A stretch of DNA of 64,000 bases from Octopus sinensis (GCF_006345805.1 NW_021835993.1:124001-188000); one strand, 5' to 3'. Positions 4,568 through 64,000 are shown, counted from the stretch's first letter. The notes: a model not told the origin generated them from the sequence alone. A program made the numbers and translations.

Positions 4568-5226
4568 ATGGTTGACTGAATGGTTGTCATTGCAGGGATT
4601 GATGAATTTTTTGACTCGATTCAGTTTCGGAAGAAAAAAGAATCTCAAGATTCTAATGCTGGGACTCGACAACGCAGGAAAGACAACAATTCTCAAGACA
4701 CTCGTCCTGGAAGACATTTCCACGACCTGTCCGACTCTGGTGGGTGGTCGCAGTCTGATTGCAGGGGTTCAACATCAAGCACGTGAAACAGAAAGGACTC
4801 AACATGACGGTGTGGGACATTGGGGGACAGAGGAAGATTCGGCCGTATTGGCGAAACTATTTGGAGAACACGGATGTGATGGTGCAGTTGGGGGGTCATT
4901 GTAGATATACGTCATCGACAGCACTGACCGGAAGAGACTGGAGGAGAGTGGTTATGTAAGTCCCCGACTGATTCCAGGAGTTGTTCGAAATCCTGGACGA
5001 GCAGATGCTGAGGAATGTGCCTGTGCTGGTGTTCTGCAATAAACAGGATCTGGTGACTGCGTGCCAGACTGACGAGATTGTGAGGTCGCTCAGTCTGTGC
5101 AACCTGAAAGGGCATGCCTGGCAAGTCCAGCCTTGTTCTGCCAAAGCAAACGAGGGTTTAAAGGTAGTCCCCGATTAGTGTCTGTAGGAGGGGTTTGACT
5201 GGATTCTCCAGGTCATGAAGAGGTGA
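4568..5226 (+). CDS. ARL3: ADP-ribosylation factor-like GTPase 3, six exons
   Basis: MG start, [33 protein letters not shown]. Introns 4571-4595, 4740-4764, 4882-4904, 4956-4977 and 5164-5187 (25, 25, 23, 22, 24 nt). Confidence 0.93.
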
Positions 5227-5328
5227 CTCAAATAAATATTCTACTTATTTTTTAATTAACGGCCGGGTCATGACTACTGGTGGCCATTCTAAGACAAAAT
5301 CATCTGTTTAAGCCATAAATAAATCCAA

Positions 5329-7201
5329 TTAGGCAACCTTAACTTGGGTATCAGTATAAACCACTGCCTCAAACACCCACTTTTGTGAACCGTCCCCCGA
5401 ACAGTCCGATAATTTGACCTCGAATTCCCCATCCTTGGCAAGACATCGAACTTTGGTCCCTTCAACATATTTCAGCAAGTGAGTCCCCTTGGAATAGAAC
5501 AGGAGCGACAGACTGAGTCATAACTCCACGGCCCTTCCCCGAAGTATTGATAGTCCAGTCGCATGACGGCGTCGTCCTGGGAGTACAGTCCCCTCTCCGA
5601 CACCCCAATGTGTCCTCTCGAGTCCAGTCGGAAATACTACCACCTCCCTCAGCCAGTCAACCATGTTCATGCAGGGCAGTTCAGGACAGCGGGCGAGACT
5701 GACACGACTGTTGACATCCTCATTGCCCGAAGTGAGACACAATGTCGAGTCCACCAACCGAATCTGAGGAGTCAGACTAAGTGCACACATTTCCGAAATG
5801 GATGTTCTCATGAGGGTACGGGTAGCTGTCCAGTAAGAAAGGGGCCACGTCTTTCATAAACCAGGAGAAGGATTTGCACTGCAGTCGATTCTTCAATGCA
5901 ATCTGGTCCCTCACATCCACACTGAACCCATCCAATTCGGGATGTCGTCGATAAAAGTATTTCCTGTGCTCCTCATCAAACCAGGTGTCGACCACACGTT
6001 TGTGATTCTGTGTGTTCTATAAAGTTCTCGAATACTCCACCAGGTCAGACAAGGGGACTTGAGACGTGTATTTGCTACTCGCCGTGGATCGTCCAGGACC
6101 GCGGTAAACGTGTCCAATGCGGGAACAGGGAACCCACAAGACAGCCCCATGACACATCCACACTTTAAAGGACAGTTCGTATTGCTCTCCTCCCCAGACA
6201 AGCAGTCCCTGGTCATAGTACCCCAATTCTTTAAAGAAGTGTCGATCAATTGCCAACAACCCCCCTGCATGGGTGGGAGAATGGTATGGCTCGCTTGACA
6301 GTTTTCCTTTCTGGAGGGGCAGATTGGCCTCCTTGTAGAAGAATCCCCACTCAAATATGCCCACGGGATTGTCACGGGAGGAGTAGACAGAAGAATACTC
6401 GAACGTGGCCCAGTCAATCCCATCGATGACAGGCACAGCAATCGCCCGACTGAATGTCATTCTCGATTATACCTGTTCTCCTTTATTACCGAAAGAAGAG
6501 GTGGCAGCCAGTTTGTGTTGACTTCGCAGTGAGCATCCAGGAAGATGACGACTCCCCCAAGGCAGCCTTCGCTCCCCTCGTCCTCGCTGCGATTAGTCCC
6601 TCATTCTCCTTGTTTCGAATCATCCGCACGAGTCCTCCATACTCCAACACCTTCAGTTGGAAACTAGTCACCAAAGCCTCTAAATAATCGAATTATGCAC
6701 ACGACCGTCGGATGTTCCGTCGTCCACCAAAATGACTTCTTTCAGCAAATTGGGAGGGCTTCTGTCGATGATGGAAGTCACTGTTCTGAACACCACAGAG
6801 AGCGACTCGTAATAAAACACCAGAATGACTGAAGCTGTGGGCAACTCTTCCGGGTAGTCCCAGAATTTGCATCTGTGAATGAATATACATTCGTACTCCT
6901 CATTCCGCGTGTCCAATATTGTTCTGTTTAGAGCAATCATTCTACTTATCTCGTCCTTGTACCCAAATGGATAGGAGGGGGCCTCTGGGTTCGTCTTAAC
7001 CCCTCTCCCATTCTCCCCCGGGCCACTTTGAAATGCAATTTCCTGCGGTTCGTAGTTGCCATACACACCATGGTGGTAGGCTGGTGATAGGACTGGGTGG
7101 GTCGAGTGTCTGAGAAGTGTCAGACTAAAGACGGCCACAACTGATAGTATCACGATTGATATCTTTTTTCGGAAGCTCAGGAAACCAAACACACGAAACA
7201 T
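5329..7201 (-). CDS. GALNT: Polypeptide N-acetylgalactosaminyltransferase, copy 1 (1-nt deletion near 6553, just before the DxH motif)
   Basis: Type II TM anchor, [52 protein letters not shown], ricin-like C-terminus; copy 2 reads FLDAHCE in frame. Confidence 0.9.
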
Positions 7202-7978
7202 TGATAACAAATTTAAATACTTGTCCAACTAAATAAATTAATAAATCAAAATACTCTCAACGTAGATGACTCAATCAGAACGTAAGAATTGTAATATGAT
7301 AGAAAGTATGTGGATTGAGTAGAACGTGGGTTGATGGACATATCCGTGTCAGCAGAATGGAGTCAATAAAAAGACTTTAACGGAGGAGGTGGACAATAAA
7401 CTGACTCTAAGAAGTGGACAGGAAGATTCAATTGGATGTCTTTGTTAGCCCTTGTGATGAGGGAATACCTGCAAGAGTAGACCGCTCTTTACGTTTCTCC
7501 TTTTATAATTCTTAATTTTACAAACCAGGTTCTCAACCATTTTTGGCTCAAGGGCCAGATCGATCATTTTTTCAAAAATAACGACTTGAATCGAGAGGCA
7601 GTCTCCGTGGAGAATTGAGACCGAGACGCCTGGAAGAGAATCGATACTTATGAGTACAAAAATATTTTATTAATTCGTGTACGAATATCAAGAATCAGAT
7701 CAGGCCAACATCCCCTCCTCACTCCCAGATGACCTCTTTCCATTCCCTAAGCAATCTCAGTCGTCTCATCGCACTTCGTGACCTTTACTTGCTGTTGATT
7801 TTTTTAAATAGGAAAACCGGGGATCAACTAACTAACTAAACGTTCCCCAATAAGGACAATGACATGAATTGGTGAAACAAGATCAATTATGGGGCTAATC
7901 AAATGATATAAACTACATGTTTAACAATCGCAATATAATCCACTGCTATTTGTGAATTTACTTATAACACGAAGCATA

Positions 7979-8960
7979 TTAGACAAGCATATCAGCAAAA
8001 AAGTCATCAAACTCCTCCTCCCTAAACGTGGACAGACACCCCAACCTCGTCTTGTCGTCCGTCAGTACGAGTGGGCCACGCCAAATGGAGTTGTCCTCCT
8101 CGGGCTCACGTTCCTCGACTGCCTTCACTTGTTCTGGCTCACTGGCGGGTTCCTCCTTGACTTGTGGTCTGATGACTTGTCGGTGCTTTCGATGGTAGTT
8201 CAACAACTCCGAACAGTCGACGCACAGTCCTGTGGACATTACCCAACATGTCACTCAGTTTGATCAATGCCTGCTTCTGAACGGCCTCCTCCGTGTAGAC
8301 AAAGTTGACTTCCCAACTGCGAAGTCCATCCTGGCGAGTACATCGAAGTGACCCGCATATGAACTGTCCTTGAAGTACAAAAGAGGAGGATACCCTTCCC
8401 GTCGATGACCTCCGCCTCCGTCCTCCACCTCATCCCGATCTACCGTCACCCACCCCTCTCACCTTGTTGTGCTTGTAGTGCTTCAGGTTGGCCAGACAGT
8501 ACTCGTGGTATAACTTGTCGTAGTACTTCTTGGCTAGTTTCTTTCCCCTGGGAGTATAAACAGACAACCAACCAAGTATCCACTGCCTCGTCCTCGTCCC
8601 ACAAAAACTTGTGATTTTCCTTAATTGTGTCCAAATCCGACTTGAAGGCCCCCACTCTACACGTCAGGCCAATTCCTACTCCTTTCGCTGATAGGGGCCC
8701 AGTGTCCCTCCGTGGTAACGAAAGTAGTCATTCACGAGTTGTTTGTGTCGGGAATACTGGGAATGATGGTGAGGCATTACAGCATCCATGCTCATGTATT
8801 TCGCACGAATCCCCTTCGCAGGTCTGAGTTGGTCATCGACGAGATACCTTTCTGAGTCGATGACTTGCGTCCGCCGTTTTCTTCCAAAGTCGTCCACCAA
8901 GTCTGCCTTTCGTCTAATTGTGTATTTTATTTGCTACTTTGATTTATTCGTTGAATCCAT
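7979..8960 (-). CDS. FRA10AC1: FRA10AC1 spliceosome-associated protein, copy 1
   Basis: Spliced frame gives RHKQLVNDY, DLDTIKENHKFLW, LAKKYYDKLYHEYCLANL, GMRWRTEAEVIDGKGQFICG, LRSWEVNFVY, ALIKLRLCVDCSELLNYH. Confidence 0.9.
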
Positions 8961-10197
8961 TTCCTTTAAAGTTGAATTAAACTGGCATGCTACCCAACAA
9001 AACACTTTTTAAATATTAATTATTATATTTTTAATACTCCTCTCATTTATTAGAATTACAAATATTGTTATTTATAAAGAATGAAAAAACAAACGATCTT
9101 CTGAGGGAACTATCGGGGAACAGAGGGAATTAGAAGGGATTGATAAAAAATATTCGGGAAGGGTGGCACATGTGAGGTAACTTTACTAACGTTGTTTTAC
9201 GGTGTGTTTATTAATAATAGTGTCGGAGAGGCCGACGAATACCTCAAAAGTCGATAAAGTCAACTCAAAAATAAGTAATTATTTTTTCATAAAAATATTA
9301 GAAATACAATTTCAAAGTTTTTTAGGTCAACTTTGTCAATTTTTGTGTCATTTTTTAATTTTCCGTCTTAATATTTTTAAAAAATATAAATATCAAATTT
9401 TGAGCCGCACCGACTTATTTAATTGTTGTTATGTTTTCTAAGTCGAAAAAATGGTACTTTTTGTAATAAATAATGAAAAATAATTAAAATCTATTGTTTA
9501 TACGTCAAGATTTATACATTGACTAAAATTGTAGATTACCCTAAATCCTACTGAAGCATTTGTATCAGCAAATATTTCCTTGTATGAACTAAGGAATACT
9601 GGGTTAATCAATTTTTTCAATACTCAGAATTCAAATGTCGAAATAATGTCAAAATTTTGGTAGAACGACGTGTCGATGAGATAATCAGCTTGTTAATTAA
9701 CGAAAAGATGTTCTTATTTGTGAATATATTCTTACTGGGAAAATAACGGATACTCAAATCAACTAAACCTTATCCCCTAAAACGGAAACCATATTGATTC
9801 GGAGAGCAATGAAATCAATTAAAAATAAAGGACTTTTTAATGATTTAAAGGAGATATGGAATAAATATTCCCCACTCGTTGATGTTCTTAGTGAAATTGA
9901 CTCGATTTAAAAGAAGATACATGTAAAATAAATGAATATAACGAGAAGAGATTGAGCTCGAATGAAATTCTAAAAATTGTCAACGGAGATGGAATTTTTT
10001 AGCCTTTGGAAAAGTTTAAACTACTACAGTGTCAGGCTACTGGGTGTTCGGTGGAGCCCTTGTTTTAAGTTTTTCATACAATTTTGGCCAAAGACCAAAA
10101 TTTTAAAACTGAAAAGGTCAAATACTATATGATTGTATATAATTGTTGTTTCTAGAAAAAATTATTGCTTAAAATTTATCTGTAAAACTTCTTTTTA

Positions 10198-10328
10198 TGA
10201 TCAAACTGAGTGACATCCTGGGTAATGTCCCAGGACTGTGCGTCGACTGTTCGGAGTTGTTGAACTACCACCGAAAGTCAAGGAGGAACCCGCCAGTGAG
10301 CCAGACCAGGTGAAGGCCGCCGAGGAAC
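10198..10328 (+). pseudogene. Inverted, diverged ~130-bp fragment of FRA10AC1 including its intron (also at 22556-22686 and 52335-52464)
   Basis: Matches the reverse complement of about 8110-8265; retains the gtgacat...cag intron; has a 25-nt internal deletion. Confidence 0.9.
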
Positions 10329-10628
10329 ATTTTGGTCAACTTTCCTCTTTTTGAATCAATTTTGTTGACTTAATGGAGGTCAATTTTTGCTTTTCTGGAC
10401 AACTTTGTGGTTGCCCTACTTATAAAATTTGAGCTAAAATGTTGTGTGATTCATTACCAAGTCAAATAAACAGGTGAACCAACCTAACCTAAGACAGAGG
10501 GACGGTTTTCCCGTGTGGTTGTGACCAAGAGTGATAGCGAGGGTTATCAACTGGACTGATATATCAACCACTTTTTGATAGCCCGGGGGTGACGCCATTA
10601 GTAAAATTAAAGTCCAATTAGTAATAGT

Positions 10629-12610
10629 TTAATTTCCACTGAAATGTGTGGAAATGTCCCTGAAGCATCTGGAAATCTTGTGGAGAATATGAATTGCCGA
10701 GTCGAGAGATTCAATGTTTTTGGAGGCAATCATTTTGTTGACCAGTTGCCCAAACGCTCGAATTTCTAAAATAGGAAGGACTGGAGAACGAGAGGCGGCG
10801 ATGGACATATCCGTGGTTATCCCCGAGTCCTCCTGCTCAGTGTAATTGACGAACTCTCCAATGAGTGATAAACAGCAGTTTGCTCGCTGGTAGGCATATC
10901 CACAAGTCTTAATGACTGCGATGGGCGAGTCTCTTTTCTCGAACTGACGTGTCACCTCCTCCAACTGTGAGGCTGCGACTAAATCTGGGAGGCCAACCAC
11001 AGACGGACAGGAACTGGGCAAAGTCGAGAGCGTCGAGTCCCAGGGTAACTGAATAGCGGAATTGGTTTCGCCAGAGTTGTACTGCTTTGGTCATTTCCTC
11101 TGATTTGCCACAAGACAGGACATTCTCCATGAGGAGTTCCAACGAGCCAACCGACCGAATCAGTTTGAGGGCGACTGGGAGTGAGGACAGGTGGCCAACC
11201 GTCCTTCTTTGTGCTGGTGATGGCCAGGAAGTAGAGGGCGTTGAGGAGTTCTTTATTGAGAAGTCTGACGGAAGTGGATTGTGAGTCCCAGTCTTCTTCC
11301 TACCATCCAAACACACCACCACCGATTTCAACAACTGGTCGACTTGTTCCACTGGCTGGGGAATGCGGAAGACCAGGTCCACCATTTTGTGGCAGGTAAG
11401 GAGTGAGAGGTTGTCGCGGAGTGTGGAGAAGAGGGTGTAGAGGGTGTTGAGGGACTTGATGCTGGGGGTGAGGACGAGAGCCAACCTGATGAACTCGTCC
11501 TTGGCCTGGAGAGAGGAGTAGGTGGAGGACTTGACGACCTGCGTGATTGAATAATGGCACTTGTTGGCATGTGTGGAGAATAGTCAGTCTGAGTGTGTCA
11601 TCTGTGCACTGACTGGTCATGAAGATGGTGATGGGGACTGTCCGCTCGATTATTTCCCGTAGTTGGAGTGACTTGACCATGTAGGACGCCGACTCGTTCA
11701 TGGAGACAATCTCCCTCAACTGCAGTCAGCCACTCACCCCACCTTTTCGTGACACTGACTGAAGATGGCCGCATTCCGTGGACAGTAGTCGTTGTAGTAG
11801 TGCTTGTGCTTGTACGACAGGGCCAACTGTCGCAGATTCTTCTTCATTTTGGCCAATATCAAATCCACGTGACCCTGACATGTCGGACGAGTATTACTTG
11901 ACATGTGTCGTCGAAAGGGGATAGGGTTGTGTAGTTGGACACACTGTTCATCAGTTGGATGATTCCCGCCAGAATATTTGATATTTTGGCAGACTGGTTG
12001 ATTGAGAGGAGTTCCTTCTGTCGAGTCTCGGCATCCCGAATGACCTGCATGATCATTCCCTTGAATTCCTAGACGTCGCCCAAGTCCCTTGCCTCGAAGG
12101 ACGCCCTGCAGAACTTGCCCCCCAACAGACTCCGCTGAATGAGTGCCGAACTGTGAGCACAGCGCAGTGCAAACACTCTGCACTTCTTGTCGTCCATAAG
12201 CAGGAGGATCTACCAATCACAACACCCCCAACGTGTGATATCGATATTACAATCTTCTTGTTTATCTCAAACAGTCTTCCAATGTCCAACTCCGACGTGT
12301 TCGTGGACAGTCCCTCCAACAGGGAGTCCAATATTCGGCATGCCTTCGACGTCTCCTCTGCCAGAATCTGCGAATGACCCATATGGACGACCGGGTCTGC
12401 TTTCGAGGTGTCGACAAGTGCGATTTCGGTTATTTTTTTAGCCGACTGGATGATGGAGTAGAAAGCCGATGCCTCTGTGCCTGCTTTTCCGCTTTTGCTG
12501 TCAAAAGTCTTGATCCAGAATTCGCACATCTGGAATGTTGGATTAAATACTTTCATATAAATTGGGTCGACAATTTTTTGGAGGGTCTTCAGTTCGTAGC
12601 CGCAGTCCAT
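10629..12610 (-). CDS. Vinculin/alpha-catenin family protein, copy 1
   Basis: ELKTLQKIVDPI, SKACRILDSLL, ISHILLLMDDKKCR, DAETRQKEL and IIQLMNSVSNY resemble the vinculin head (D1) helices; multiple ~23-nt introns. Confidence 0.65.
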
Positions 12611-12789
12611 TGCTCTACATTGGAGTAGTCAGGGGAGGAGGGCAGCCAGTAAAATAATATATTTGCAGCATTTAAACATACCCGATTACCAAGTTCTGAG
12701 TTTAAATAAATGTATTTCATTTTGGGCCATATAAATAATTAACTAACAAATTAAATAAATATAAATTAACAAATAAATGTTCCATAATC

Positions 12790-13240
12790 CTTGTTTATAG
12801 CAGCTCGTGTGTGTTAGCTCAAAGTAAATAGGATCAGAGCAAAGGAGACCTGAATGTAGAGAGAATTCAACTTTGGAGTAGTTTGTCTATTCTCAACCAT
12901 CGTCATGGATACAGAAAATCGAATTTGACAAGGTGGCGAGTGCACTACTATTCAGAGAGAGAACAATGGCGAGTATTTGCTCGTCCAACAGCCTTAAATA
13001 GTCCCCCACTTATTCGATTGATTGGGAGAGGAGTGTTCTAAATAGTGGGTTTCATTTATATAAAGTAGGGCATGTATGCGGAAAGTTGCGGGGTGGAGTT
13101 GGCCTGTTCTGTTCTCGCATAGATCATTGGCATATTCGTGAATAATCAGCTAATTGGGCTCGTCAACAGAAACCCCTCAACAGCCACCACAAGACCAGTC
13201 CTCCGGCAATCTGAGGACCAACTAAATCAAGGAAACTAGC
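12790..13240 (+). CDS. Possible small multi-exon gene, unidentified (also in copies 2 and 3)
   Basis: Higher-GC island between AT-rich spacers with several GT...AG segments of intron size; no unambiguous reading frame could be reconstructed. Confidence 0.25.
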
Positions 13241-13310
13241 CAATCCCCCTAATGGTACCCCAAAGTAGTACTCGATATGCTTAACATCTCGGATTATATA
13301 TTAGAATTTG

Positions 13311-13938
13311 TTATTTTCTTAAAGATTTAATAAAATTGGAGATTTTCTTTTCGCCCATTTTTATGTCGTTGGCGACAGTGCCCAGCACGCCGGCCTATGA
13401 ATGCAGCAGACGACCAACCTCCGACTTTTCTGCCCTGTCGTTGTCGGCGATCCTTTTGAGGATTTCAGTTTTGGATATCTCGAGGACGAGTCCGCCCATT
13501 ACAATTTCGTTGAGAACTTGATGGACCTGCCAGTGAGACACAAGCGAGGACAGTATCGACGTGGAAGACCAAGTCGAGTTCACACACATTGGTGAAGAGG
13601 GCGTCCAGAATTTCGACAAACACTTGAATTAGGTCGATTATGGCGAGAGGGCTTTCGAGTGAGTCAATGTAGAACACAAAGTGGAGAGTGGCATATGTCC
13701 TGTACACCAGAATGCCGTCCTTGCCGCACAGTCTGGCAATGAGAGAGCACTTACTTTCCCCCCTCCACGAACGAGCAGTCCTCGGGAGTCCGGCCAGTGA
13801 TGAGTATGTACGTGTCCTCTACTAACTCCCGCTGTTCTCGCTCAGACTGGCTAATCAGTGCATGTTTACGTAGTGCTCGTAGAATTTGGTCAGACGAGGT
13901 TTCCCACTTCGGTTGAACACGAGAACTGCCTTAATCAT
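13311..13938 (-). CDS. AP3S1: AP-3 complex subunit sigma, copy 1
   Basis: MIKAVLVFNRSGKPRLTKFY, YRTYATLHFVF, VFVEILDALFTNVCELDLVFHVD, VHQVLNEIVMGGLVLE, EKSEAG. Confidence 0.93.
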
Positions 13939-14026
13939 TCGACTAATTAATTCTATTTTATTCAAACAGTCCTTTAATACATTGTTCAAAAATACACTAC
14001 AATCCAATATAAAGACATTAGCGGTT

Positions 14027-15969
14027 ATGAGTGAACATGTCGGCTTTTGGGTGAATTTCACGAAATACAACATCCACTTGGTCAGACTGATTGCCGAAGG
14101 TAGCCGCCGTATTTCAGTCCAGGCGCATTCGGACTAATCTACTTGGGAGTGGACGTCCGAACCAAGTCGAAATATGTGGTCAAGAAACTGGTCAAGGGCG
14201 ATAAAATGCGAGTCGAAAATGAAATCAGAATTCAAGTAGTCGTGGTAGAATAACACCTGAGAGTCTGTTCAACAAGTGCGACAACATTGTCCATCTCATC
14301 ACGTGGAATCAAATCCACATCCTCGGGGAAACTCACTTTAATTTGCTGATGGATTTTTGCCAGGGTCTCACTTTGTTGGCATTGAAGGCGGCTCCCTCCA
14401 CGACTACTTTGCCAAGCCCAGAAAACTCAGCCACCTCGAAATTTACTACATTTTCATCTCCGTTCTGAAAGCCCTGGAGAAACTCCACTGCATGGACCCG
14501 CCGATCATACACCGAGACCTCAAGGTGACTGACCCTTTATAAGACAGCTCGAAAACATTATGGTCGCGAACGGACGTGTCAAACTGGGAGACTTTGGCAG
14601 TGCAACCACCAATGTTTACAGACCCTCTGCAAACTGGACAGAAGAGGAACTAAAGGGACTCGAGAGAGAAGTAGAAACAGCCTATAAGTCTAGATCAAGT
14701 GCTGCACCACTCCCTGCTATCGGTCCCCAGAAATGGTGGACGTCCGACTATTCCTGGAATTGGGACTGGGACAGGACATTTGGGTATTCGCTCGGCCAAA
14801 CTCAGGCTCTTGGATGTCTCCTGTACTTCCTGTGCTTTTCCTCGCTCCCCTTTGACATTTATTCCGCTCGACGAATCCTCAACTTGGAATACGACTTGCC
14901 TCCCTCCAGACACCCGACATGTCTCACATTACTCATAAGTTCTCATGTGCTCGCTCACCCTAGAACACATTTTTGTCCTCAAACCCCAACAAAGGCCCAC
15001 CGTGACTGATATCCTGACAAAACTAGTCGCGTCGGCCAACGCTTTCAAATTCAATCTTTGGAAGCCCCCTTCCTCTCTTTTCAGTGGGGTCTCGCGGAAT
15101 TCCGATCTGATCTCCAAAATGGTTGACGACAAGCCGTCTCATCGGTGCGGCCACATTGCCCTGACGTCGAGAGTGCACGGTTATGCTGACATGCTCAATT
15201 GCAGCATATTTTACTTGGAGCAAAATAGGGGACAAACATCTGTCGAACATACTCACGTCGTGCATTAGTCAAGGAATACTTAACCCCTGCATTTCCGACC
15301 TGTGCATTATCAACATGACAGGACACACACTCGACACACCTCTCAGGATAAAGGTCCACTCACCCTACACACATTTTAGATCGTTCAAGTTCTCTTCAAA
15401 TCACATCAATTCCACTCGATCGAGTTGGTGTTGAAACACTTGTCGGTGGTGCTCGAAGTGCTTTCTTCTGGGAAGACGACACTGTTTATATCGAAGGTGG
15501 TGCCTGCTCATATAGACTAGCCCGACGACTCCACCATCCACTTCTTCTTTGTGCTGATTCTGCTTTCTTCAAAGATTTTCACAGATTTGAAGGAATGTGA
15601 AAAATACCTGAATTCTAATAATTTCCAATCTCTTTTGTCACCTGCCGAAAAAGAGTATCCTACCTAAACATCCCCAGACAAATAACTGCACTGACCAACC
15701 AAGTCCTATATGTCAATAATTTGTCGAGCAAGTCCCTTTTTATTTGTCCGTTGGACGTTGCCTGTCTGGAAGAATTGAGGGACTTGGAGCACCGGCACGG
15801 TAATCAGCTTTCTCGTATTCAGATGTGTCGTCGAATGTTCGGGATCTGATTGGGAAGAGAACAAACAACATTGGTGATACAACACAGAATGGACCTGATG
15901 ACAAAACATTCGATGATTTCCCAATTTGTAGAAATTATTTGTATATTTTTAGTTAACACTGATTTCTGA
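14027..15969 (+). CDS. GAK: NAK-family Ser/Thr kinase, GAK-like (kinase plus degenerate PTEN-like region), copy 1
   Basis: LIAEGAFGLIY, YVVKKL, PPIIHRDLK-LEN, VKLGDFGSATT, TTPCYRSPEM, QDIWALGCLLYFLCF; the downstream segment resembles the GAK/auxilin PTEN-like domain. Confidence 0.75.
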
Positions 15970-16051
15970 ACAGTGTTCTTTTGATGTTTATTTAGTAGTT
16001 CTAATTACAGAAAAGACTTTTACAGATTAGATTCGACTCACTGTCCAAACA

Positions 16052-16255
16052 TGTAAACCGACTTCAAAGTCACGCCTTCTGTCAAACGGGGTTCCGGAAG
16101 GTTCCTCTCTCTCGCTCACCCTGTTTAATTTTTTCATCGCTGATCTGCCTGTACCAGATAATAAAAACAACATTCTGATTTCCTGCGCCGACGAAATTGT
16201 CATTGCTTTAAAGACTGGTACATCCTGGCTGCTTCATCAACGCTACATTAAATAA
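16052..16255 (+). mobile_element. Degenerate non-LTR (LINE) reverse-transcriptase fragment; copies near 28416, 31616, 34815 and 58191
   Basis: Translates SNGVPEGSSLSLTLFNFFIADLP...ISCADEIVI, a decayed GVPQGSxLSPxLF...YADD. Confidence 0.8.
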
Positions 16256-16266
16256 CTGGACCACTG

Positions 16267-16860
16267 CTAACCGCCTATTAAAATGTCTAAAAAATCGGAG
16301 ATCTCCCTCTTCATCTCGGATAAAAGAGTTCGGAAGAAATCATTGCATCTTACACTGGATAACAATAAAATTCTTTTTGCAGTGGATGGATCCGAAAGGT
16401 TATGTTTGATACTCACACATGCTTTTTTCATTTCGTTTCTAGTAAAGACCATCATCTCTGAAAATACTTGTAGTTTCGAGAATTCACATAATTGATCCAT
16501 TTGTCTGATGAGAAGGATAAATGTAGCATTTCTGGACCTCAACACAGTGCATTACTTCTACGAAGTAACATAAGTGAATTAACAACTGAATTTCAGACGA
16601 GGAGTAGCCAATGTCCAGAAACTATCAATCTGAAATCATTGGAAAACTATTTTGGTTGGTTAGAAAGTAACTAAATCGGTGTTTATAAGGAATTTCCATC
16701 GTCTGAAGTGAATAAGGAACTGGCCGACACTTTTGTGGAGTTAGTTTTGAAATCTGCCAGAGTTCTCAGAAGTCATCGAAGAAAGACGGAGATTGTGGGG
16801 ACAAATGAAGCAAAAGTGTCAAAAAGGATTTGTAGTTTGACTTTTCCGTATTTGAGTGAA
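16267..16860 (-). pseudogene. Coding-like, unidentified minus-strand exons (five copies in the window), probably the 3' part of a gene hit by the RTE insertion
   Basis: 92-aa ORF 16267..16545 plus an open stretch that continues across the RTE target-site duplication; no clean splice path found. Confidence 0.3.
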
Positions 16861-17598: not shown

Positions 17599-17695
17599 CT
17601 CAAATAAATATTCTACTTATTTTTTAATTAACAGCCGTGACTACTGGTGGCCATTCTAAGACAAACTCATCTGTTTAAGCCATAAATAAATCCAA

Positions 17696-52766: not shown

Positions 52767-54747
52767 TTAATTTCCACTGAAATGTGTGGAAATGTCCCTG
52801 AAGCATCTGGAAATCTTGTGGAGAATATGAATTGCCGAGTCGAGAGATTCAATGTTTTTGGAGGCAATCATTTTGTTGACCAGTTGCCCAAACGCTCGAA
52901 TTTCTAAAATAGGAAGGACTGGAGAACGGGAGGCGGCGATGGACATATCCGTGGTTATCCCCGAGTTCTCCTGCTCAGTGTAATTGACGAACTCTCCAAT
53001 CAGTGATAAACAGCAGTTTGCTCGCTGGTAGGCATATCCACAAGTCTTGATGACTGCGATGGGCGAGTCTCTTTTCTCGAAATGACGTGTCACCTCCTCC
53101 AACTGTGAGGCTGCGACTAAATCTGGGAGGCCAACCACAGACGGACAGGAACTGGGCAAAGTCGAGAGCGTCGAGTCCCAGGGTAACTGAATAGCGGAAT
53201 TGGTTTCGCCAGAGTTGTACTGCTTTGGTCATTTCCTCTGATTTGCCACAAGACAGGACATTCTCCATGAGGACTTCCAACGAGCCAATGGACCGAATCA
53301 GTTTGAGGGCGACTGGGAGTGAGGACAGGTGGCCAACCGTCCTTCTTTGTGCTGGTGATGGCCAGGAAGTAGAGGGCGTTGAGGAGTTCTTTATTGAGAA
53401 GTCTGACAGAAGTGGATTGTGAGTCCCAGTCTTCTTCCTACCATCCAAACACACCACCACCGATTTCAACAACTGGTCGACTTGTTCCACTGGCTGGGGA
53501 ATGCGGAAGACCAGGTCCACCATTTTGTGGCAGGTAAGGAGTGAGAGGTTGTCGCGGAGTGTGGAGAAGAGGGTGTAGAGGGTGTTGAGGGACTTGATGC
53601 TGGGGGTGAGGACGAGAGCCAACCTGATGAACTCGTCCTTGGCCTGGAGAGAGGAGTAGGTGGAGGACTTGACGACCTGCGTGATTGAATAATGGCACTT
53701 GTTGGCATGTGTGGAGAATAGTCAGTCTGAGTGTGTCATCTGTGCACTGACTGGTCATGAAGATGGTGATGGGGACTGTCCGCTCGATTATTTCCCGTAG
53801 TTGGAGTGACTTGACCATGTAGGACGCCGACTCGTTCATGGAGACAATCTCCCTCAACTGCAGTCAGCCACTCACCCCACCTTTTCGTGACACTGACTGA
53901 AGATGGCCGCATTCCGTGGACAGTAGTCGTTGTAGTAGTGCTTGTGCTTGTACGACAGGGCCAACTGTCGCAGATTCTTCTTCATTTTGGCCAATATCAA
54001 ATCCACGTGACCCTGACATGTCGGACGAGTATTACTTGACATGTGTCGTCGAAAGGGGATAGGGTTGTGTAGTTGGACACACTGTTCATCAGTTGGATGA
54101 TTCCCGCCAGAATATTTGATATTTTGGCAGACTGGTTGATCGAGAGGAGTTCTTTCTGTCGAGTCTCGGCGTCCCGAATGACCTGCATGATCATTCCCTT
54201 GAATTCCTAGACGTCGCCCAAGTCCCTTGCCTCGAAGGACGCCCTGCAGAACTTGCCCCCCAACAGACTCCGCTGAATGAGTGCCGAACTGTGAGCACAG
54301 CGCAGTGCAAACACTCTGCACTTCTTGTCGTCCATCAACAGGAGGATCTACCAATCACGACACCCCAACGTGTGATATCGATATTACAATCTTCTTGTTT
54401 ATCTCAAACAGTCTTCCAATGTCCAACTCCGACGTGTTCGTGGACAGTCCCTCCAACAGGGAGTCCAATATTCGGCATGCCTTCGACGTCTCCTCTGCCA
54501 GAATCTGCGAATGACCCATATGGACGACCGGGTCTGCTTTCGAGGTGTCGACAAGTGCGATTTCGGTTATTTTTTTAGCCGACTGGATGATGGAGTAGAA
54601 AGCCGATGCCTCTGTGCCTGCTTTTCCGCTTTTGCTGTCAAAAGTCTTGATCCAGAATTCGCACATCTGGAATGTTGGATTAAATACTTTCATATAAATT
54701 GGGTCGACAATTTTTTGGAGGGTCTTCAGTTCGTAGCCGCAGTCCAT
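52767..54747 (-). CDS. Vinculin/alpha-catenin family protein, copy 3
   Basis: Duplicate; its 1-nt deletion near 54362 lies inside an intron. Confidence 0.65.
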
Positions 54748-55449
54748 TGCTCTACATTGGAGTAGTCAGGGGAGGAGGGCAGCCAGTAAAATAATATATT
54801 TGCAGCATTTAAACATACCCGATTACCAAGTTCTGAGTTTAAATAAATGTATTTCATTTTGGGCCATATAAATAATTAACTAACAAATTAAATAAATATA
54901 AATTAACAAATAAATGTTCCATAATCCTTGTTTATAGCAGCTCGTGATGTATTAGCTTAAAGTAAATAGGATCAGAGCAAAGGAGACCTGAATGTAGAGA
55001 GAATTCAACTTTGGAGTAGTTGGTCTATTCTCAACCATCGTCATGGATACAGAAAATCGAATTTGACAAGGTGGCGAGTGCACTACTATTCAGAGAGAGA
55101 ACAATGGCGAGTATTTGCTCGTCCAGCAGCCTTAAATAGTCCCCCACTTATTCGATTGATTGGGAGAGGAGTGTTCTAAATAGCGGGGTTTTATTTCTAT
55201 AAAGTAGGGCATGTATGCGGAAAGTTGCGGGGTGGAGTTGGCCTGTTCTGTTCTCGCATAGATCATTGGCATATTCGTGAATAATCAGCTAATTGGGTTC
55301 GTCAACAGAAACCCCTCAACAGCCACCACAAGACCAGTCCTCCGGCAATCTGAGGACTAACTAAATCAAGGAAACTAGCCAATCCCCCTAATGGTACCCC
55401 AAAGTAGTACTCGACATGCTTAACATCTCGGATTATATATTAGAATTTG

Positions 55450-56077
55450 TTATTTTCTTAAAGATTTAATAAAATTGGAGATTTTCTTTTCGCCCATTTT
55501 TATGTCGTTGGCGACAGTGCCCAGCACGCCGGCCTATGAATGCAGCAGACGACCAACCTCCGACTTTTCTGCCTTGTCGTTGTCGGCGATCCTTTTGAGG
55601 ATTTCAGTTTTGGATATCTCGAGGACGAGTCCGCCCATTACAATTTCGTTGAGAACTTGATGGACCTGCCAATGAGACACAAGCGAGGACAGTATCGACG
55701 TGGAAGACCAAGTCGAGTTCACACACATTGGTGAAGAGGGCGTCCAGAATTTCGACAAACACTTGAATTAGGTCGATTATGGCGAGAGGGCTTTCGAGTG
55801 AGTCAATGTAGAACACAAAGTGGAGAGTGGCATATGTCCTGTACACCAGAATGCCGTCCTTGCCGCACAGTCTGGCAATGAGAGAGCACTTACTTTCCCC
55901 CCTCCACGAACGAGCAGTCCTCGGGAGTCCGGCCAGTGATGAGTATGTACGTGTCCTCTACTAACTCCCGCTGTTCTCGCTCAGACTGGCTAATCAGTGC
56001 ATGTTTACGTAGTGCTCGTAGAATTTGGTCAGACGAGGTTTCCCACTTCGGTTGAACACGAGAACTGCCTTAATCAT
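55450..56077 (-). CDS. AP3S1: AP-3 sigma, copy 3
   Basis: Duplicate of 13311-13938. Confidence 0.92.
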
Positions 56078-56165
56078 TCGACTAATTAATTCTATTTTAT
56101 TCAAACAGTCCTTTAATACATTGTTCAAAAATACACTACAATCCAATATAAAGACATTAGCGGTT

Positions 56166-58108
56166 ATGAGTGAACATGTCGGCTTTTGGGTGAATTTCAC
56201 GAAATATAACATCCACTTGGTCAGACTGATTGCCAAAGGTAGCCGCCGTATTTCAGTCCAGGCGCATTCGGACTAATCTACTTGGGAGTAGACGTCCGAA
56301 CCAAGTCGAAATATGTGGTCAAGAAACTGGTCAAGGGCGATAAAATGCGAGTCGAAAATGAAATCAGAATTCAAGTAGTCGTGGTAGAATAACACCTGAG
56401 AGTTTGTTCAACAAGTGCGACAACATTGTCCATCTCATCACGTGGAATCAAATCCACATCCTCGGGGAAACTCACTTTAATTTGCTGATGGATTTTTGCC
56501 AGGGTCTCACTTTGATGGCATTGAAGGCGGCTCCCTCCACGACTACTTTGCCAAGCCCAGAAAACTCAGTCACCTCGAAATTTACTACATTTTCATCTCC
56601 GTTCTGAAAGCGCTGGAGAAACTCCACTGCATGGACCCGCCGATCATACACCGAGACCTCAAGGTGACTGACCCTTTATAAGACAGCTCGAAAACATTAT
56701 GGTCGCGAACGGACGTGTCAAACTGGGAGACTTTGGCAGTGCAACCACCAACGTTTACAGACCCTCTGCAAACTGGACAGAAGAGGAACTAAAGGGACTC
56801 GAGAGAGAAGTAGAAACAGCCTATAAGTCTAGATCAAGTGCTGCACCACTCCCTGCTATCGGTCCCCAGAAATGGTGGACGTCCGACTATTCCTGGAATT
56901 GGGACTGGGACAGGACATTTGGGTATTCGCTCGGCCAAACTCAGGCTCTCGGATGTCTCCTGTACTTCCTGTGCTTTTCCTCGCTCCCCTTCGACATTTA
57001 TTCCGCTCGACGAATCCTCAACTTGGAATACGACTTGCCTCCCTCCAGACACCCGACATGTCTCACATTACTCATAAGTTCTCATGTGCTCGCTCACCCT
57101 AGAACACATTTTTGTCCTCAATCCCCAACAAAGGCCCACCGTGACTGATATCCTGACAAAACTAGTCGCGTCGGCCAACGCTTTCAAATTCAATCTTTGG
57201 AAGCCCCCTTCCTCTCTTTTCAGTGGGGTCTCGCGGAATTCCGATCTGATCTCCAAAATGGTTGACGACAAGCCGTCTCATCGGTGCGGCCACATTGCCC
57301 TGACGTCGAGAGTGCACGGTTATGCTGACATGCTCAACTGCAGCATATTTTACTTGGTGCAAAATAGGGGACAAACATCTGTCGAACATACTCACGTCGT
57401 GCATTAGTCAGGGAATACTTAACCCCTGCATTTCCGACCTGTGCATTATCAACATGACAGGACACACACTCGACACACCTCTCAGGATAAAGGTCCACTC
57501 ACCCTACACACATTTTAGATCGTTCAAGTTCTCTTCAAATCACATCAATTCCACTCGATCGAGTTGGTGTTGAAACACTTGTCGGTGGTGCTCGAAGTGC
57601 TTTCTTCTGGGAAGACGACACTGTTTATATCGAAGGTGGTGCCTGCTCATATAGACTAGCCCGACGACTCCACCATCCACTTCTTCTTTGTGCTGATTCT
57701 GCTTTCTTCAAAGATTTTCACAGATTTGAAGGAATGTGAAAAATACCTGAATTCTAATAATTTCCAATCTCTTTTGTCACCTGCCGAAAAAGAGTACCCC
57801 ACCTAAACATCCCCAGACAAATAACTGCACTGACCAACCAAGTCCTATATGTCAATAATTTGTCGAGCAAGTCCCTTTTTATTTGTCCGTTGGACGTTGC
57901 CTGTCTGGAAGAATTGAGGGACTTGGAGCACCGGCACGGTAATCAGCTTTCTCGTATTCAGATGTGTCGTCGAATGTTCGGGATCTGATTGGGAAGAGAA
58001 CAAACAGCATTGGTGATACAACACAAAATGGACCTGACGACAAAACATTCGATGATTTCCCAATTTGTAGAAATTATTTGTATATTTTTAGTTAACACTG
58101 ATTTCTGA
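56166..58108 (+). CDS. GAK: GAK-like kinase, copy 3 (apparently intact)
   Basis: Duplicate with the QDIWALGC frame intact. Confidence 0.75.
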
Positions 58109-58999
58109 ACAGTGTTCTTTTGATGTTTATTTAGTAGTTCTAATTACAGAAAAGACTTTTACAGATTAGATTCGACTCACTGTCCAAACATGTAAACCGA
58201 CTTCAAAGTCACGCCTTCTGTCAAACGGGGTTCCGGAAGGTTCCTCTCTCTCGCTCACCCTGTTTAATTTTTTCATCGCTGATCTGCCTGTACCAGATAA
58301 TAAAAACAACATCCTGATTTCCTGCGCCGACGAAATTGTCATTGCTTTAAAGACTGGTACATCCTGGCTGCTTCATCAACGCTACATTAAATAACTGGAC
58401 CACTGCTAACCGCCTATTAAAATGTCTAAAAAATCGGAGATCTCCCTCTTCATCTCGGATAAAAGAGTTCGGAAGAAATCATTGCATCTTACACTGGATA
58501 ACAATAAAATTCTTTTTGCAGTGGATGGATCCGAAAGGTTATGTTTGATACTCACACATGCTTTTTTCATTTCGTTTCTAGTAAAGACCATCATCTCTGA
58601 AAATACTTGTAGTTTCGAGAATTCACATAATTGATCCATTTGTCTGATGAGAAGGATAAATGTAGCATTTCTGGACCTCAACACAGTGCATTACTTCTAC
58701 GAAGTAACATAAGTGAATTAACAACTGAATTTCAGACGAGGAGTAGCCAATGTCCAGAAACTATCAATCTGAAATCATTGGAAAACTATTTTGGTTGGTT
58801 AGAAAGTAACTAAATCGGTGTTTATAAGGAATTTCCATCGTCTGAAGTGAATAAGGAACTGGCCGACACTTTTGTGGAGTTAGTTTTGAAATCTGCCAGA
58901 GTTCTCAGAAGTCATCGAAGAAAGACGGAGATTGTGGGGACAAATGAAGCAAAAGTGTCAAAAAGGATTTGTAGTTTGACTTTTCCGTATTTGAGTGAA

Positions 59000-59496
59000 T
59001 ATAGTCGAATTACGACAAAAAAATAGTCGAATTACAAATTTCTTCTTGTTGCCTTGCAAATTCTTCTGACAAATCCTTCACGGATCCTTCCAAAGCTCAC
59101 AGCAAAAGAGTGGACTCACTGGAATTATGGTGCTGGCGCAAACTTTTGAACATAAATCGGTACGACAAAGTGTCAAATGTCGTTGTTCTCGAAAGGATTA
59201 AACCTACACTGTCGCTTGTGGCGAAAGTTTGGAAGAAACAATTATCATATTTGGGGCACGTGCTTCGGGAGAATGGTATAGGAAAAGAAATCCTGCTGTC
59301 TTCGTTCGCTGGAAAAAGGAAACAGGGTAGACCGAAACTAAACTGGACATCTGAAGTAGTGAAACTTACTGGACATCATTTGTCGGAAATAGCAGAGCTG
59401 GTGGGGGATAGAGTTTCGTGGAGGGACCTGTCTTACAGAATCGCCAATGGCCGGAATGGCTGAATATGGCTTAACTTTAACTTTATAGTCGAATTA
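59000..59496 (+). mobile_element. 5'-truncated RTE LINE insertion, undeleted allele, with target-site duplication
   Basis: ELWCWRK...LSYLGHVLRENGIGKEILLSSFAGKRKQGRPKLNW; tail TAACTTTAACTT; TATAGTCGAATTA at 59000-59012 and 59484-59496. Confidence 0.88.
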
Positions 59497-60290
59497 ATAC
59501 GGTCGATTTACACTCACTAATGGTTGATTAAATTATGATTATAAACCAACAGCCCCTCACAGTGAAATGCGTAAAGAAATCGCCATTTGTATAGCTGATT
59601 CGTATCTTTCGTTAAATATTTTGCTGAACAGCCTGATGACCTACTGGGTTGAAACCAATAATAGCGAGAACTACGGAATGTACATGCAAGGAATATATTC
59701 GTCGAATTATTTTAGAAATGAACGACCAAACATACTTTTTCGAACAATTTCCAAATGAGACGTGGAGAAGTTGCGTCGGCACGATGAATTGGATGAATGT
59801 GACCAATCTGGGCCTCTCAATTTCCACTTTTGCTTTGATGTTCGGAAATAAATTCCCAGCTGTGGTGTTCGTCGGGCATATAATCTGCGGTCGTAGAGTA
59901 CAGTTGATAAATAGATATTGTGAACATATTAGCCGGAGGAGTGTTCGTCCGAAATGGAATAGTCGAGTACTGTCATCAGTTGTGGAGTACAACCAAGATA
60001 CCTGTAGTCTGTACCATCCGGGAAGGGCTTTCATACCACATTGGATTGTCCTTTCTCCACATTTTGTACTGCGCAATAGTCATGTTCCACTATACTTGCA
60101 AAAGACCTCACAAAGGATGAAAACGCCCCTAATCACCATTTTAACTGAAATTGTGTTCATTTCCCACATGTAACGCCACAATTCATAAAATTAAACGATA
60201 TCGGTAAGATAGTCTCACACACAACGTAATATTCCTAACGAGCAACAACAAAACATAGCCAAAATGATAACGGAAATTAATTTATGTCGA

Positions 60291-61136
60291 CTAAATCTGC
60301 CTGCGAGGACTACTGGGGTCATAAGCAATCAAAACTTACTCTGCACGACCATAACTTGCATTCCTCCTACGAATATATCAAATACACAGAGAATACACAT
60401 ATCCCCCATCACTGCAATTAAACAACAACCACCAACCGACTTGGCGAATCACGGACTTTCCTCTCACTTCGGTCATACCATCTACAATAGAGAACTTGAA
60501 TAACCTGAAATCACCACGGAACTGCCTCTCTGCTGATCTAAGACACACCAATTCATTATTTAGGAAGGAAACGCTAATATGGCACAGCAGACAACCTCCA
60601 CCCCCCACAGTCGCGAGCAAAGTGTCCCCGATTGCCACAATTATAACACCGCATGTCCAATCCGGGCTTCCCCCTCCCCTTCGTCCGCGGTTTGGCCACA
60701 GTCACTCGAATTCGACTCGACTTGATGACTCTGCACATATTCAGACAATACTCACGCCCCGTCCAGACTGATCATTGCTTCCGTCGCGTCCTCGTCCGTC
60801 CGGAAAATGACGAATCCAAAACACGGAGGGGACTTGGCCACCCAAACGTCTTCCACATCTCCGTACACTTTGAAGGCAGTTATTAAATCCTTTTCTGTTA
60901 TTTCCGGGCCGAGGTCGCCGATGTGGAGACGGTTTTGCGGATCTTCCTGAGGGAGGTCCTGAAACCGTTCCTTGCTGGTCGAACGACTGCGATTTGTCCG
61001 TCTTCGTCCGCTCTCTTCGTACCAGACTGGGGAACACCCGTGCTTTCGGGTTGAATTAGACTTGGATTGCTGAGGAGATACAGGGGGTGACATTATCACT
61101 AATATGTTGTGTAATTAGACCACCTTCATCCACCAT
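60291..61136 (-). CDS. SRSF7: SRSF7-like protein, copy 2
   Basis: Duplicate of 36859-37704; the two changes in the RNP1 codons (GGT TTT vs GGA TTC) are synonymous. Confidence 0.75.
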
Positions 61137-61375
61137 GACAAAATGTTTCTTGGATATTTAAATTAATTTATTAATTAACAAAATTAAGTATCAATGTTTA
61201 AAATAATTGTTTTATAAAATCTCCACCCAGATTCTGTAGGCATCTCCAGCGTTTCCGACCGTCTTGAAGACTCCCCTTACCTTCTTAAACCATCGCATCG
61301 AAGCCAATTACTGTATTTTAAATGGTGAATTTATAAACGAGCAGTTGCCTAGAAACGTAATCAAGCCAAGACGAC

Positions 61376-62564
61376 ATGGCTACAGAATCCTACGACACAG
61401 ATCTGGAGAACATGAACGGTACACTTTTTGTTACATTTTAGGCAGCCAGTCTGAGGAGGGCAGAGAGGAAATGGAACCCGAGGGAGAGGAGGAAGAAGAC
61501 GTATGACTGTACTCTGACTGATAGACTGAGGCCGTCCCTCTGTCCCCCTCCATTCTGGGAGAGGGCCTTTCCCTCATCAACAAAGTGTCCGACGGGTTCG
61601 CCCATGCCTATGTCCGCTTGTCACTCAGAGAGAGGTCACCCACTCACTGACTTGTAGGAGTCTGAATAACTTGGAGGGCATTCAGGGGTTCATCCACCTT
61701 CGATTCGTCGACCTTTCGAATAACTACATCAAAAGTCTGCAGCCGTTAGAGAATCTGACCACTCTGCTTGTCCTCAACTGCGACAACAACAAAATCACAT
61801 CCATCGATCTGCCACCACTCCAATTCCTGCAAATCCTCAGTCTCAGCAACAACAGAATCAAGTCGACAGAGGGACTGAACTTCCCCCTCTTAGAACAACT
61901 AATACTCAACGGTAGCTCGTCGAATGTAGTCCAGACAACGACATCACGGAGATTAGAGGACTGGACCCCACCATTTTCTCGAGTCTCCACTCCCTCGAAC
62001 TGAGAGGAAACAAAATTGCATCGACCGGAGGAATCAATCTCCCGAACTTGAGGAATCTGTACTTGGTATTTGAAGGGTTCCAATGTAGGCTGCCAACAGA
62101 CTGACTGACCTGACCGACGTGGATTGTCTTTCCAGTTTGCAGACCCTCCATCTGAGGGACAACAGTCAACTGAGCAACTTGAATGGATTGTCGGGGTCAC
62201 TCTCTTCTCTCCATACCCTCAATTTGCGGTTTGCTCGAATGTTCATGTCAGATCGACTGACGTGTCCACTTTCGCAGAAATAGTCAAATTGGAACAGCTT
62301 AGAGCACTAAAAAAACTAACGCTTAGCGGTACCCCAAACTTGTTTATTTTCAGAGACCCCAATCGCAAGCGAGCCTACTTACCGTGCGGAAGTCCTCTCC
62401 TACATCAAGAGTCTTGCGACGTTGGACAAAGACAATATAACCGAGGACGAGGTTTTGGAAGCCCAGGAAATCAGGAATCTGAGAATGGAGGAGGACGCTC
62501 TCTCAGAAGTCATAATATTTCTTTATTTAGTTAGACCGAGCCACCTAAGGACATTGAGGCATGA
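61376..62564 (+). CDS. LRRC23: LRRC23, copy 2
   Basis: Duplicate of 37957-39148 with a 3-nt indel in the acidic tract. Confidence 0.85.
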
Positions 62565-63330
62565 CACATTCTCAAATCAAACTAACACGTTTTAAAGTAA
62601 TAAAATTAGTTCAGTTGAGGAGAGTCCCCTTTTGAAGAAAGGAAACGTTCTCCTTCAATTAGTAGTGGCCCACACTTGGTCATAAACAGGTCAATTAATT
62701 AGTCTTTTGATGAGACAAATCAAAGCATTTGTTTACACTTGTATTATATTGTTCAGATTAAGGTTATTTATGATTGTTCTAATTATTCGAGTTGTTCTTA
62801 GAATTAATTTGAATTGACGTTAATTTATTTGTTGGAATAATATATAATGACTCATAAAAATGGATCAGCTAATAAAATTAATGCAAATTCCATTAATTAT
62901 ACATTTTAATTATGTGTCGATCTTTGTAATTACAATTTGAGATTTGCTGTAGGTCAGGTGATAAAGAGACCATTTTCTGGCACATTGGTTTCGTGACATT
63001 GTGAATTTATCGCCCAATTATGGTTGTCTAGCAATACCCAAAACAATGCCCGAATTTTATAATATCAAGGAATCGAGCCGTCAATCAGTCTGCTTCCGCA
63101 AACCGCATGGGAGTTACTGAATATTGGTTTATGGTTTCGATTTGGCAAAAGCAACCCTCATTTGAGGAGAGAAGCGGAAGGCATCAATTCATGATTAATT
63201 GGAAACATTTCAAAGAAAACTCGCATTGTCGTGCTGTCAATACATTGCCATTGGCGTTAATTGCGTTTCTCGCTTTCGAATAAGCACTCTGCGCGTTCGC
63301 GTGATTTGAATATTGTTTTTTCTTCCTCTC

Positions 63331-64000
63331 ATGTGGTATATCTTTCTCCTCTGTCCTGGTTTCTCTACGGCAGTCCTAGTCTACTCCGTCCGGGAGGAGT
63401 TGCCAGTCGGCACCGTCATAGGCAATGTCTTTGAGGATCTTCGACTCGAAAATTCAGAATCTAGCCAATTAACATATGGAATATTCGAGAACTCTGCGGC
63501 AGGAGATCTTTTTGAAATCGACAAAACTGGCAATTTGATTACACTGGAAAGAATCGACCGGGAAGGAGTTTGTTCAGGATCTGCTGACGAATGTTTTGTT
63601 TTTCTTAGAGTTCTCATCGGTTTTTCGAATGGCAGGACCAACATTGCCGATTTAAAGGTGAAGATAACGGATATAAACGACAACAACCCGACTTTCGACC
63701 CTCCCTCCCTTACTGTTGATGTCCTAGAGTCGTCTAATATTGGGGAATTGATCCCAATCAAGTCCGCTGAGGATCGTGACTCCAAAGAATATGGAATCAC
63801 GGAGTACAGAATTCTGAACAAATCAGAAATTCCATTTTCTCTGAAAAAGAGGGAAACTCATTTATATTTGGAGTTGTTGCAGAAACTTGACCGTGAATCT
63901 CATCAGTCTTACTTTTTCGAAATTGTCGCCCAGGACAGTGGAGGGCAAGTGGGAGTGTTGAACGTGACGGTTAATATTTTGGACGAGAATGACAATGTCC
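63331..64000 (+). CDS. Protocadherin, copy 2 (5' part, frame intact, runs off the right edge)
   Basis: Has TTT at 63861-63863, so KRETHLYLELLQKLDRE reads through. Confidence 0.92.
   Translation, partial: MWYIFLLCPGFSTAVLVYSVREELPVGTVIGNVFEDLRLENSESSQLTYGIFENSAAGDLFEIDKTGNLITLERIDREGVCSGSADECFVFLRVLIGFSNGRTNIADLKVKITDINDNNPTFDPPSLTVDVLESSNIGELIPIKSAEDRDSKEYGITEYRILNKSEIPFSLKKRETHLYLELLQKLDRESHQSYFFEIVAQDSGGQVGVLNVTVNILDENDNV

Follow-up and report, generated by a model that had tools for sequence, protein, structure and literature searches.

Why should tandem units as different in size as 12.4, 3.2 and 23.4 kb be stacked at one locus, and why should copy number peak over the single segment, D, that is included in all three? 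The locus lies in VCDQ01007225.1:124001-188000, the 64,000-nucleotide stretch analysed here as the window, which belongs to a 359,758-bp contig in the Octopus sinensis assembly GCA_006345805.1 and has 0 N and a G+C content (GC) of ~43 %. The contig was reached from a protocadherin open reading frame, through three paralogous proteins that it encodes, and the coordinates follow from 100 % matches between the window and two loci retrieved from it. A first-pass annotation had divided the stretch into lettered blocks and had proposed a fragile or re-replicating site, perhaps even an undescribed genome-dynamics process. Self-BLASTN of the window reproduces its block order, A BCD BCDE DE DEF(G) CDEF, its copy numbers within the window (B = 2, C = 3, D = 5, E = 4, F = 2) and all three of its junction types at the same coordinates, and these three types bear out the claim of several independent rearrangements. 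The copies are 98.5-99.8 % identical over 0.6-12.4 kb, far beyond chance, and every repeat match of at least 300 nt is in direct (head-to-tail) orientation. With moderate confidence, the locus can be explained by ordinary tandem segmental duplications that are inherited and fairly recent and lie stacked on one another, together with a single unequal exchange, all in the genome of a dicyemid; that the contig is not octopus DNA at all is very probable.

Junctions and divergence of the copies

The rearrangements can be read against a sixth copy (L001), which carries C-D-E-F-G-H at ~99 % identity on the same contig, 93 kb downstream. In this copy D passes directly into E and F, and the tail of G continues into H; both passages are uninterrupted, so L001 represents the unrearranged state for the second and third junctions (J2 and J3). 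The fifth unit, followed in a retrieved locus that reaches 14 kb past the end of the window, continues there through G, minus its last 1.2 kb, into new sequence, H. A 23.4-kb unit repeated five to six times up to copy 6 is unlikely, given that copy 5 enters H and that three protocadherin paralogues are on record for VCDQ01007225.1; the contig is unseen between 202 and 270 kb. A 51-aa ENA sequence grouped with the protocadherins (L004, L005) proved to be a spurious cluster member, with no nucleotide similarity to the window. For J2, an exact look-up of the 149-aa open reading frame (ORF) at the start of D3 gave no independent contig that carries the junction.

Each junction type has its own anatomy (Table 1). 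At J1, the D side lies inside a fragment of a long interspersed nuclear element (LINE) and the B side 5 nt short of the end of ARL3 exon 1. The filler of J2 opens with a copy of D's first 7 nt (AGCTCGA), and its end, together with the first 3 nt of D3 (AGC), forms a 10-mer, ACATATTAGC, that recurs in E, where the source sits 22 nt upstream of the E break. The same AGC, common to E and D, is the 3-nt microhomology that follows the filler. Point changes gather beside two of the junctions: the first private changes of C5 lie at +9, +14 and +24 from J3, with the next ones only at +65/+687 (three changes observed against ~0.17 expected per 24 nt at 0.7 %), and D3/D4 have one private change at +11 from J2. 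No private point changes were found adjoining J1. These features fit the known marks of polymerase-theta-type end joining or of replication template switching, namely fork stalling and template switching (FoSTeS) or microhomology-mediated break-induced replication (MMBIR), either of which may have been the pathway. Textbook marks of this kind leave no need for an undescribed process.

The second J2 probably has a different origin. A 25-mer across the filler is present at both 30097 and 33297, and the neighbouring units are identical or nearly so: D3 and D4 are separated by a single 1-nt indel without substitutions, and E2, E3 and E4 have zero substitutions among them. A repeated junction between identical units is as expected of homology-driven expansion, and the second J2 would mark a later gain of one D-E unit; it is identical to the first because the extra unit probably arose by unequal crossing-over or replication slippage.

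The remaining differences between copies are nearly all substitutions (0.2-0.9 %, with transitions and transversions at ~2:1) with few indels, and substitutions exceed gap events 3- to 18-fold. As read from the sequence, this pattern is one of biological divergence and not of long-read noise. The copies are further distinguished by a LINE insertion, by deletions of 73 bp and ~1.6 kb, each with microhomology at its ends, and by two frameshifts of 1 nt, so that, taken with the substitutions, they look like inherited paralogues of different ages. The proposal of re-replication is not supported by these differences: most copies look like paralogues that would have passed through the germline, not like products of somatic re-replication. 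The larger deletion removed from copy 5 a segment at the G end that holds part of a second kinase gene, with CC microhomology, which corresponds to window positions 50118-51272 (1155 nt) plus 433 bp seen only in L001; J3 cuts, in copy 4, this same segment. Ranked by divergence, the data suggest that J1 is the oldest junction, J3 intermediate and J2 the youngest, in an order blurred by conversion.

Evidence for such mixing comes from D, where the site patterns of at least five distinct haplotypes are mutually incompatible; the copies have therefore been mixed by gene conversion or recombination. In D6, all private changes (10 substitutions and 4 gap events) fall in the last 600 bp before an empty LINE site (L001 5480-6146), and the first 1650 bp have none. 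This looks like gene conversion halting at an insertion heterology.

The same observations bear on the suspicion that a long-read assembler laid alleles, or variants of a mixed parasite population, end to end, in which case some or all of the extra copies would not lie on one chromosome. The divergence of 0.2-0.9 % matches the heterozygosity reported for a dicyemid (1.24 %, PMC6736024), the LINE-less copy 6 could be the other allele, and the single-base frameshifts, one in the second kinase copy and one in the fourth protocadherin copy, resemble uncorrected long-read errors. By-catch DNA in a 2.7-Gb host project probably had low coverage, and dicyemid DNA is reportedly hard to assemble (PMC6543705). 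The junctions, however, join unrelated sequence, whereas overlap-based misjoins need shared sequence, and templated filler and junction-proximal mutations are biological signatures. With no N gaps in the window, differences made of substitutions instead of raw long-read indel noise, and D haplotypes that exceed two alleles, an artefact of this kind is unlikely.

The head-to-tail junctions might also stem from circles or from onion-skin replication, whose products the assembly would have combined with the chromosomal locus. Dicyemid somatic cells reportedly rearrange, eliminate and selectively amplify DNA and form extrachromosomal circles, and for Dicyema developmentally regulated circular DNA is described and selective amplification suggested (PMC6543705, citing Noto 2003 and Awata 2006). 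Head-to-tail junctions would result from circles of 12.4, 3.2 and ~30 kb, and both the presence of D in every unit and the absence of substitutions within the D3/D4 and E2-E4 sets speak for such circles. Most copies, however, are set apart by substitutions, by private deletions and by a LINE insertion, none of which would be expected if one template had been copied somatically; the circles described from dicyemids are mostly <2 kb and non-coding (PMC6543705), and D/E showed nothing origin-like or palindromic. A somatic source of the junctions is thus improbable. It is likewise improbable that the array is the trace of dicyemid somatic amplification and circle formation, with the identical D-E units, and perhaps the other head-to-tail junctions, produced during development by excision, rolling-circle replication or re-replication around D/E, in an assembly that mixes germline and somatic molecules. 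If true, a dicyemid amplicon that bears genes would here be seen at sequence level for the first time; were the D-E units somatic, the locus would be a test bed for the long-standing claim that dicyemids rearrange their DNA somatically.

The D block and the LINE at its border

The border between D and E is marked by a 5'-truncated LINE fragment of roughly 400-470 bp, flanked in D2-D5 by a 13-bp target-site duplication. D1 retains only the left half of the fragment, severed by J1, and in copy 6 the site is empty (L001 ~6140). Since all five D copies in the window carry the LINE and the site in copy 6 is empty, the window copies go back to a single ancestor that already had the LINE, and the insertion predates all three junctions. 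The intact target-site duplication, together with an empty site in a 99 % identical paralogue, points to recent LINE activity. Within the LINE, D2-D4 all lack the same 73 bp, a deletion with 2 nt of microhomology. The 3' end of the element is an AACTTT repeat instead of poly-A.

D had been described as holding no intact recognised gene, which is correct only in that the block has no more than exons 5-8 of a kinase; the kinase that these exons complete is apparently intact, with its spliced frame open in copies 1, 5 and 6 (three of the four full copies) and all seven GT-AG introns kept. The suggestion of a fragile site also stands in part. Extra breakage is present at the D/E border, where the LINE insertion, J1 and the 73-bp deletion fall within ~250 bp and the D side of J1 is 18 bp from the start of that deletion. 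This cluster of breaks in and beside the LINE is the sole hint of local fragility. No notable palindromes, hairpins or inverted repeats were found at D/E, and a scan of the window returned no Rfam family match. The copy-number pyramid by itself is no proof of a fragile site: three random duplications of 12.4, 3.2 and 23.4 kb share a segment in 12 % of simulations for a 64-kb region and in up to 60 % for a 28-kb locus. Existing duplicates, moreover, promote further duplications.

Dosage selection on one gene, which the first-pass annotation had also discounted, is unneeded to explain the peak over D. A broader adaptive amplification would have kept extra doses of the kinase, a clathrin adaptor sigma chain, an MCT transporter and a protocadherin, to the benefit of a parasite that feeds by endocytosis. 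The open kinase frames and retained introns would suit this, the sigma chain adjoins the kinase in block C, and in Dicyema japonicum families linked to endocytosis, an MFS transporter among them, are reportedly expanded (PMC6736024). The segment amplified most, D-E, contributes nothing beyond kinase halves without their 5' part and a piece of LINE, however; J1 truncates ARL3, one kinase copy (copy 2) and one protocadherin copy (copy 4) carry frameshifts, and the differences are too few for a test of non-synonymous against synonymous rates (dN/dS). That retention was adaptive is hardly to be expected.

Under inherited tandem duplication, the preferred reading, the locus would have been built in six steps: (i) a larger duplication that split off the lineage of copy 6, 93 kb downstream, (ii) the LINE insertion at the D/E border, (iii) the 12.4-kb B-C-D duplication that created J1, (iv) a duplication of C through the G-tail that created J3, (v) the 3.2-kb D-E duplication that created J2, and (vi) one more D-E copy through unequal crossing-over or replication slippage. 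The three founding junctions would have joined non-homologous sequences by polymerase-theta-type end joining or by template switching, and gene conversion between copies may later have shuffled their variants. Several observations weigh against this scheme. The between-copy divergence is within the range of the dicyemid heterozygosity cited above, and some 'copies' could be alleles or parasite-population variants. D3/D4 have four variants in common with D1, yet share the 73-bp deletion with D2, and C6 is nearer to C2 and C5 than C1 is, though copy 6 is without the LINE. No simple duplication order fits unless gene conversion is invoked, and the LINE, with two breaks at a distance of 18 bp, gives a hint of some fragility at this place.

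Source organism and genes of the contig

The contig is filed as octopus; it is very probably dicyemid by-catch, a reading based on its tiny introns and on the lack of a cephalopod near-match for three of its proteins in a contig from an O. sinensis assembly. Fourteen GT..AG introns of 21-41 nt, most of them 22-25 nt, occur in three genes (seven in a kinase, four in ARL3 and three, of 21-25 nt, in an MCT-like transporter). Among animals, introns <30 nt have been reported only from myxobolid myxozoans and Dicyema (PMC13644364), and the median intron of Dicyema sp. is 27 bp (PMC6543705). Protein searches, which covered 5.8 billion proteins, gave neither a cephalopod near-match nor any other close relative for the three proteins searched: ARL3 reached at most 62 % identity among the matches listed, with no cephalopod among them, and the best identities for the kinase and the protocadherin were 34 % and 31 %. 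D. japonicum inhabits octopus renal sacs, and its genome has 49 % repeats and many LINE ORF2 copies besides the heterozygosity of 1.24 % (PMC6736024). In the renal organ dicyemids can number thousands per cubic centimetre, at a prevalence of up to 100 % (PMC12953835). Two points tell against the assignment: the searches brought up no sequence attributed to a named dicyemid, and the window has a GC of ~43 % vs 36.7 % reported for D. japonicum.

The probable mislabelling is more useful as a finding than the duplication structure. Proteins of the contig carry octopus names, such as XP_036356024.1 'protocadherin-7-like', which bears on studies of cephalopod protocadherin expansion and on contamination screening. 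In addition, the contig provides sequence of great contiguous length for animals whose genomes are hard to assemble and reportedly undergo somatic rearrangement.

The region is gene-dense, and the kinase shows how its genes are built. A generic scan for GT..AG segments between neighbouring ORFs was unspecific, since nearly every pair was joinable, and homology-guided splicing was used instead. The seven introns measure 23, 41, 23, 23, 29, 22 and 25 nt. With the first six removed, the product matches GAK/AAK1-like kinases along 98 % of its length (E 7e-44), and the alignment has no gap at four of these intron sites and small gaps adjoining the other two; the seventh intron was placed afterwards, at a 5-residue alignment gap. 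On unspliced DNA, tblastn gives only weak, frame-hopping matches to the homologues. A pseudogene or retrocopy was rejected, as a GT..AG segment lies at each frame change and splicing yields a full-length product. D3 and D4 hold 5'-truncated kinase halves. Kinase copy 2 has a 1-nt insertion (27174 region) and protocadherin copy 4 a 1-nt deletion (40457); these frameshifts may be early pseudogenisation or uncorrected long-read errors. The ARL3 copy in B2 (from 17107) is without exon 1. The start of D (14546) is the AG that ends kinase intron 4, the C/D border being formed by the last 2 nt of that intron; such closeness to intron and exon ends is unremarkable, because an intron boundary occurs roughly every 100 nt.

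Some further observations concern individual genes. The clathrin adaptor sigma chain (13468-13818, minus strand) stands head to head with the kinase (14027-15268, plus strand) and is co-duplicated in C; both proteins belong to clathrin-mediated endocytosis, a feeding route proposed for dicyemids. The genes with tiny introns (14027-15268, 4602-5226 and 47937-49953) seem to be missed or mis-modelled in public annotation: the protein searches with the kinase and ARL3 returned no self match. The annotated RRM gene model extends 6.4 kb across the D-E repeats (31304-37661), vs an RRM ORF at 37323-37682. Block B holds a homologue of FRA10AC1, a 'folate-sensitive fragile site protein' (8142-8429, minus strand), which is a coincidence of naming only. 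Upstream of the array, a minus-strand Pro/Gln/Asn-rich ORF (2434-3267) without a Pfam match contains a 57/132-bp tandem repeat (2879-3175) of ~2-3 copies with 81-90 % matches.

Table 1. Junctions, units, LINE copies and genes of the locus, in window coordinates.
Feature	Position	Strand	Details
J1 (D to B), head-to-tail	17106-17107		Compared with unrearranged D2 to E2 and A to B1; 1 nt (C) microhomology
J2 filler, 13 nt	30097-30109	+	AGCTCGACATATT; exact 10-mer at 30075 and 30103
Second J2 junction	33297-33309	+	Same sequence as first
J3 (G-tail to C), blunt	51272-51273		Compared with unrearranged G-tail in L001; 0 nt microhomology
Unit 1	4735-17106	+	B1 4735-9135, C1 9136-14545, D1 14546-17106; 99.1 % to 17107-29471 (self-BLASTN)
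Unit 2	17107-30096	+	B2 17107-21493, C2 21494-26908, D2 26909-29488, E2 29489-30096
D3 E3 unit, 3.2 kb	30110-33296	+	5'-truncated kinase, exons 5-8, ~30112-30832
D4 E4 unit	33310-36494	+	One 1-nt indel between D4 and D3
F and G	36495-51272	+	Single copy in this unit
Unit 5	51273-64000	+	C5 51273-56684, D5 56685-59264, E5 59338-59945, F5 59946-64000 onward
LINE, 73 nt in unit 5	59265-59337		Between D5 and E5; deleted in D2-D4
LINE fragment, 5'-truncated, D/E border	29238-29634	+	Flanked by 13-bp target-site duplication TATAGTCGAATTA
Further LINE copies	16874-17106 (cut by J1), 32438-32834, 35637-36032, 59013-59483		
GAK/AAK1-like (NAK family) kinase	14027-15268	+	351 aa, 8 exons; homology-guided splicing
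Other full kinase copies	26390-27632 (1-nt frameshift), 56166-57407		
ARL3-like GTPase	4602-5226	+	5 exons; introns 25, 23, 22, 24 nt; exon 1 in A, rest in B
Block B, content			ARL3 exons 2-5, FRA10AC1-like gene, glycosyltransferase-like ORF
Block C, content			DUF1765-like gene, clathrin adaptor sigma chain, kinase exons 1-4
Block D, content			Kinase exons 5-8, most of the LINE fragment straddling the D/E border
F and G, content			RRM protein (-), LRR protein (+), protocadherin 39928-44270 (+), MCT-like MFS transporter 47937-49953 (-), second kinase fragment 50655-50939 (-)

Comparison with known systems

Complex tandem duplications formed by FoSTeS/MMBIR or by polymerase-theta end joining have been described for human copy-number variants, Caenorhabditis elegans and Drosophila. 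The locus resembles them in its head-to-tail units, in the unrelated partners and 0-3 nt of microhomology at its junctions, in the short filler copied from within 30 nt of a break, in the nesting of events at one locus and in the point changes within 25 nt of two junctions. It differs in that it lies in a putative dicyemid genome and is known from one assembly only. Unlike a single replication catastrophe, the events appear to be spread over time, as divergence differs from junction to junction. As a case of genome dynamics, it is a clean but ordinary set of nested tandem duplications with readable repair scars.

Arrays that grow by unequal crossing-over or slippage have a counterpart in the third D-E unit, whose junction is identical to that of the second and whose flanks are without substitutions; only one such step is visible here, in an array of just three units. 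The stepwise fall in copy number on either side of a centre recalls onion-skin re-replication, as in the Drosophila chorion amplicons and in yeast re-replication-induced amplification. In contrast with those systems, the copies here are diverged, the junctions lie off pre-existing repeats, there are three steps only and no origin was identified. The closest comparison in terms of organism is with the somatic rearrangement and circles of dicyemids (Noto 2003; Awata 2006; Zverkov 2019, PMC6543705), probably the same kind of animal, and head-to-tail junctions are compatible with circles. The described circles are small (median ~700 bp), mostly non-coding and have short motifs in common (PMC6543705), whereas the units here measure 3-30 kb, carry genes, have diverged and lie within a linear contig of 360 kb.

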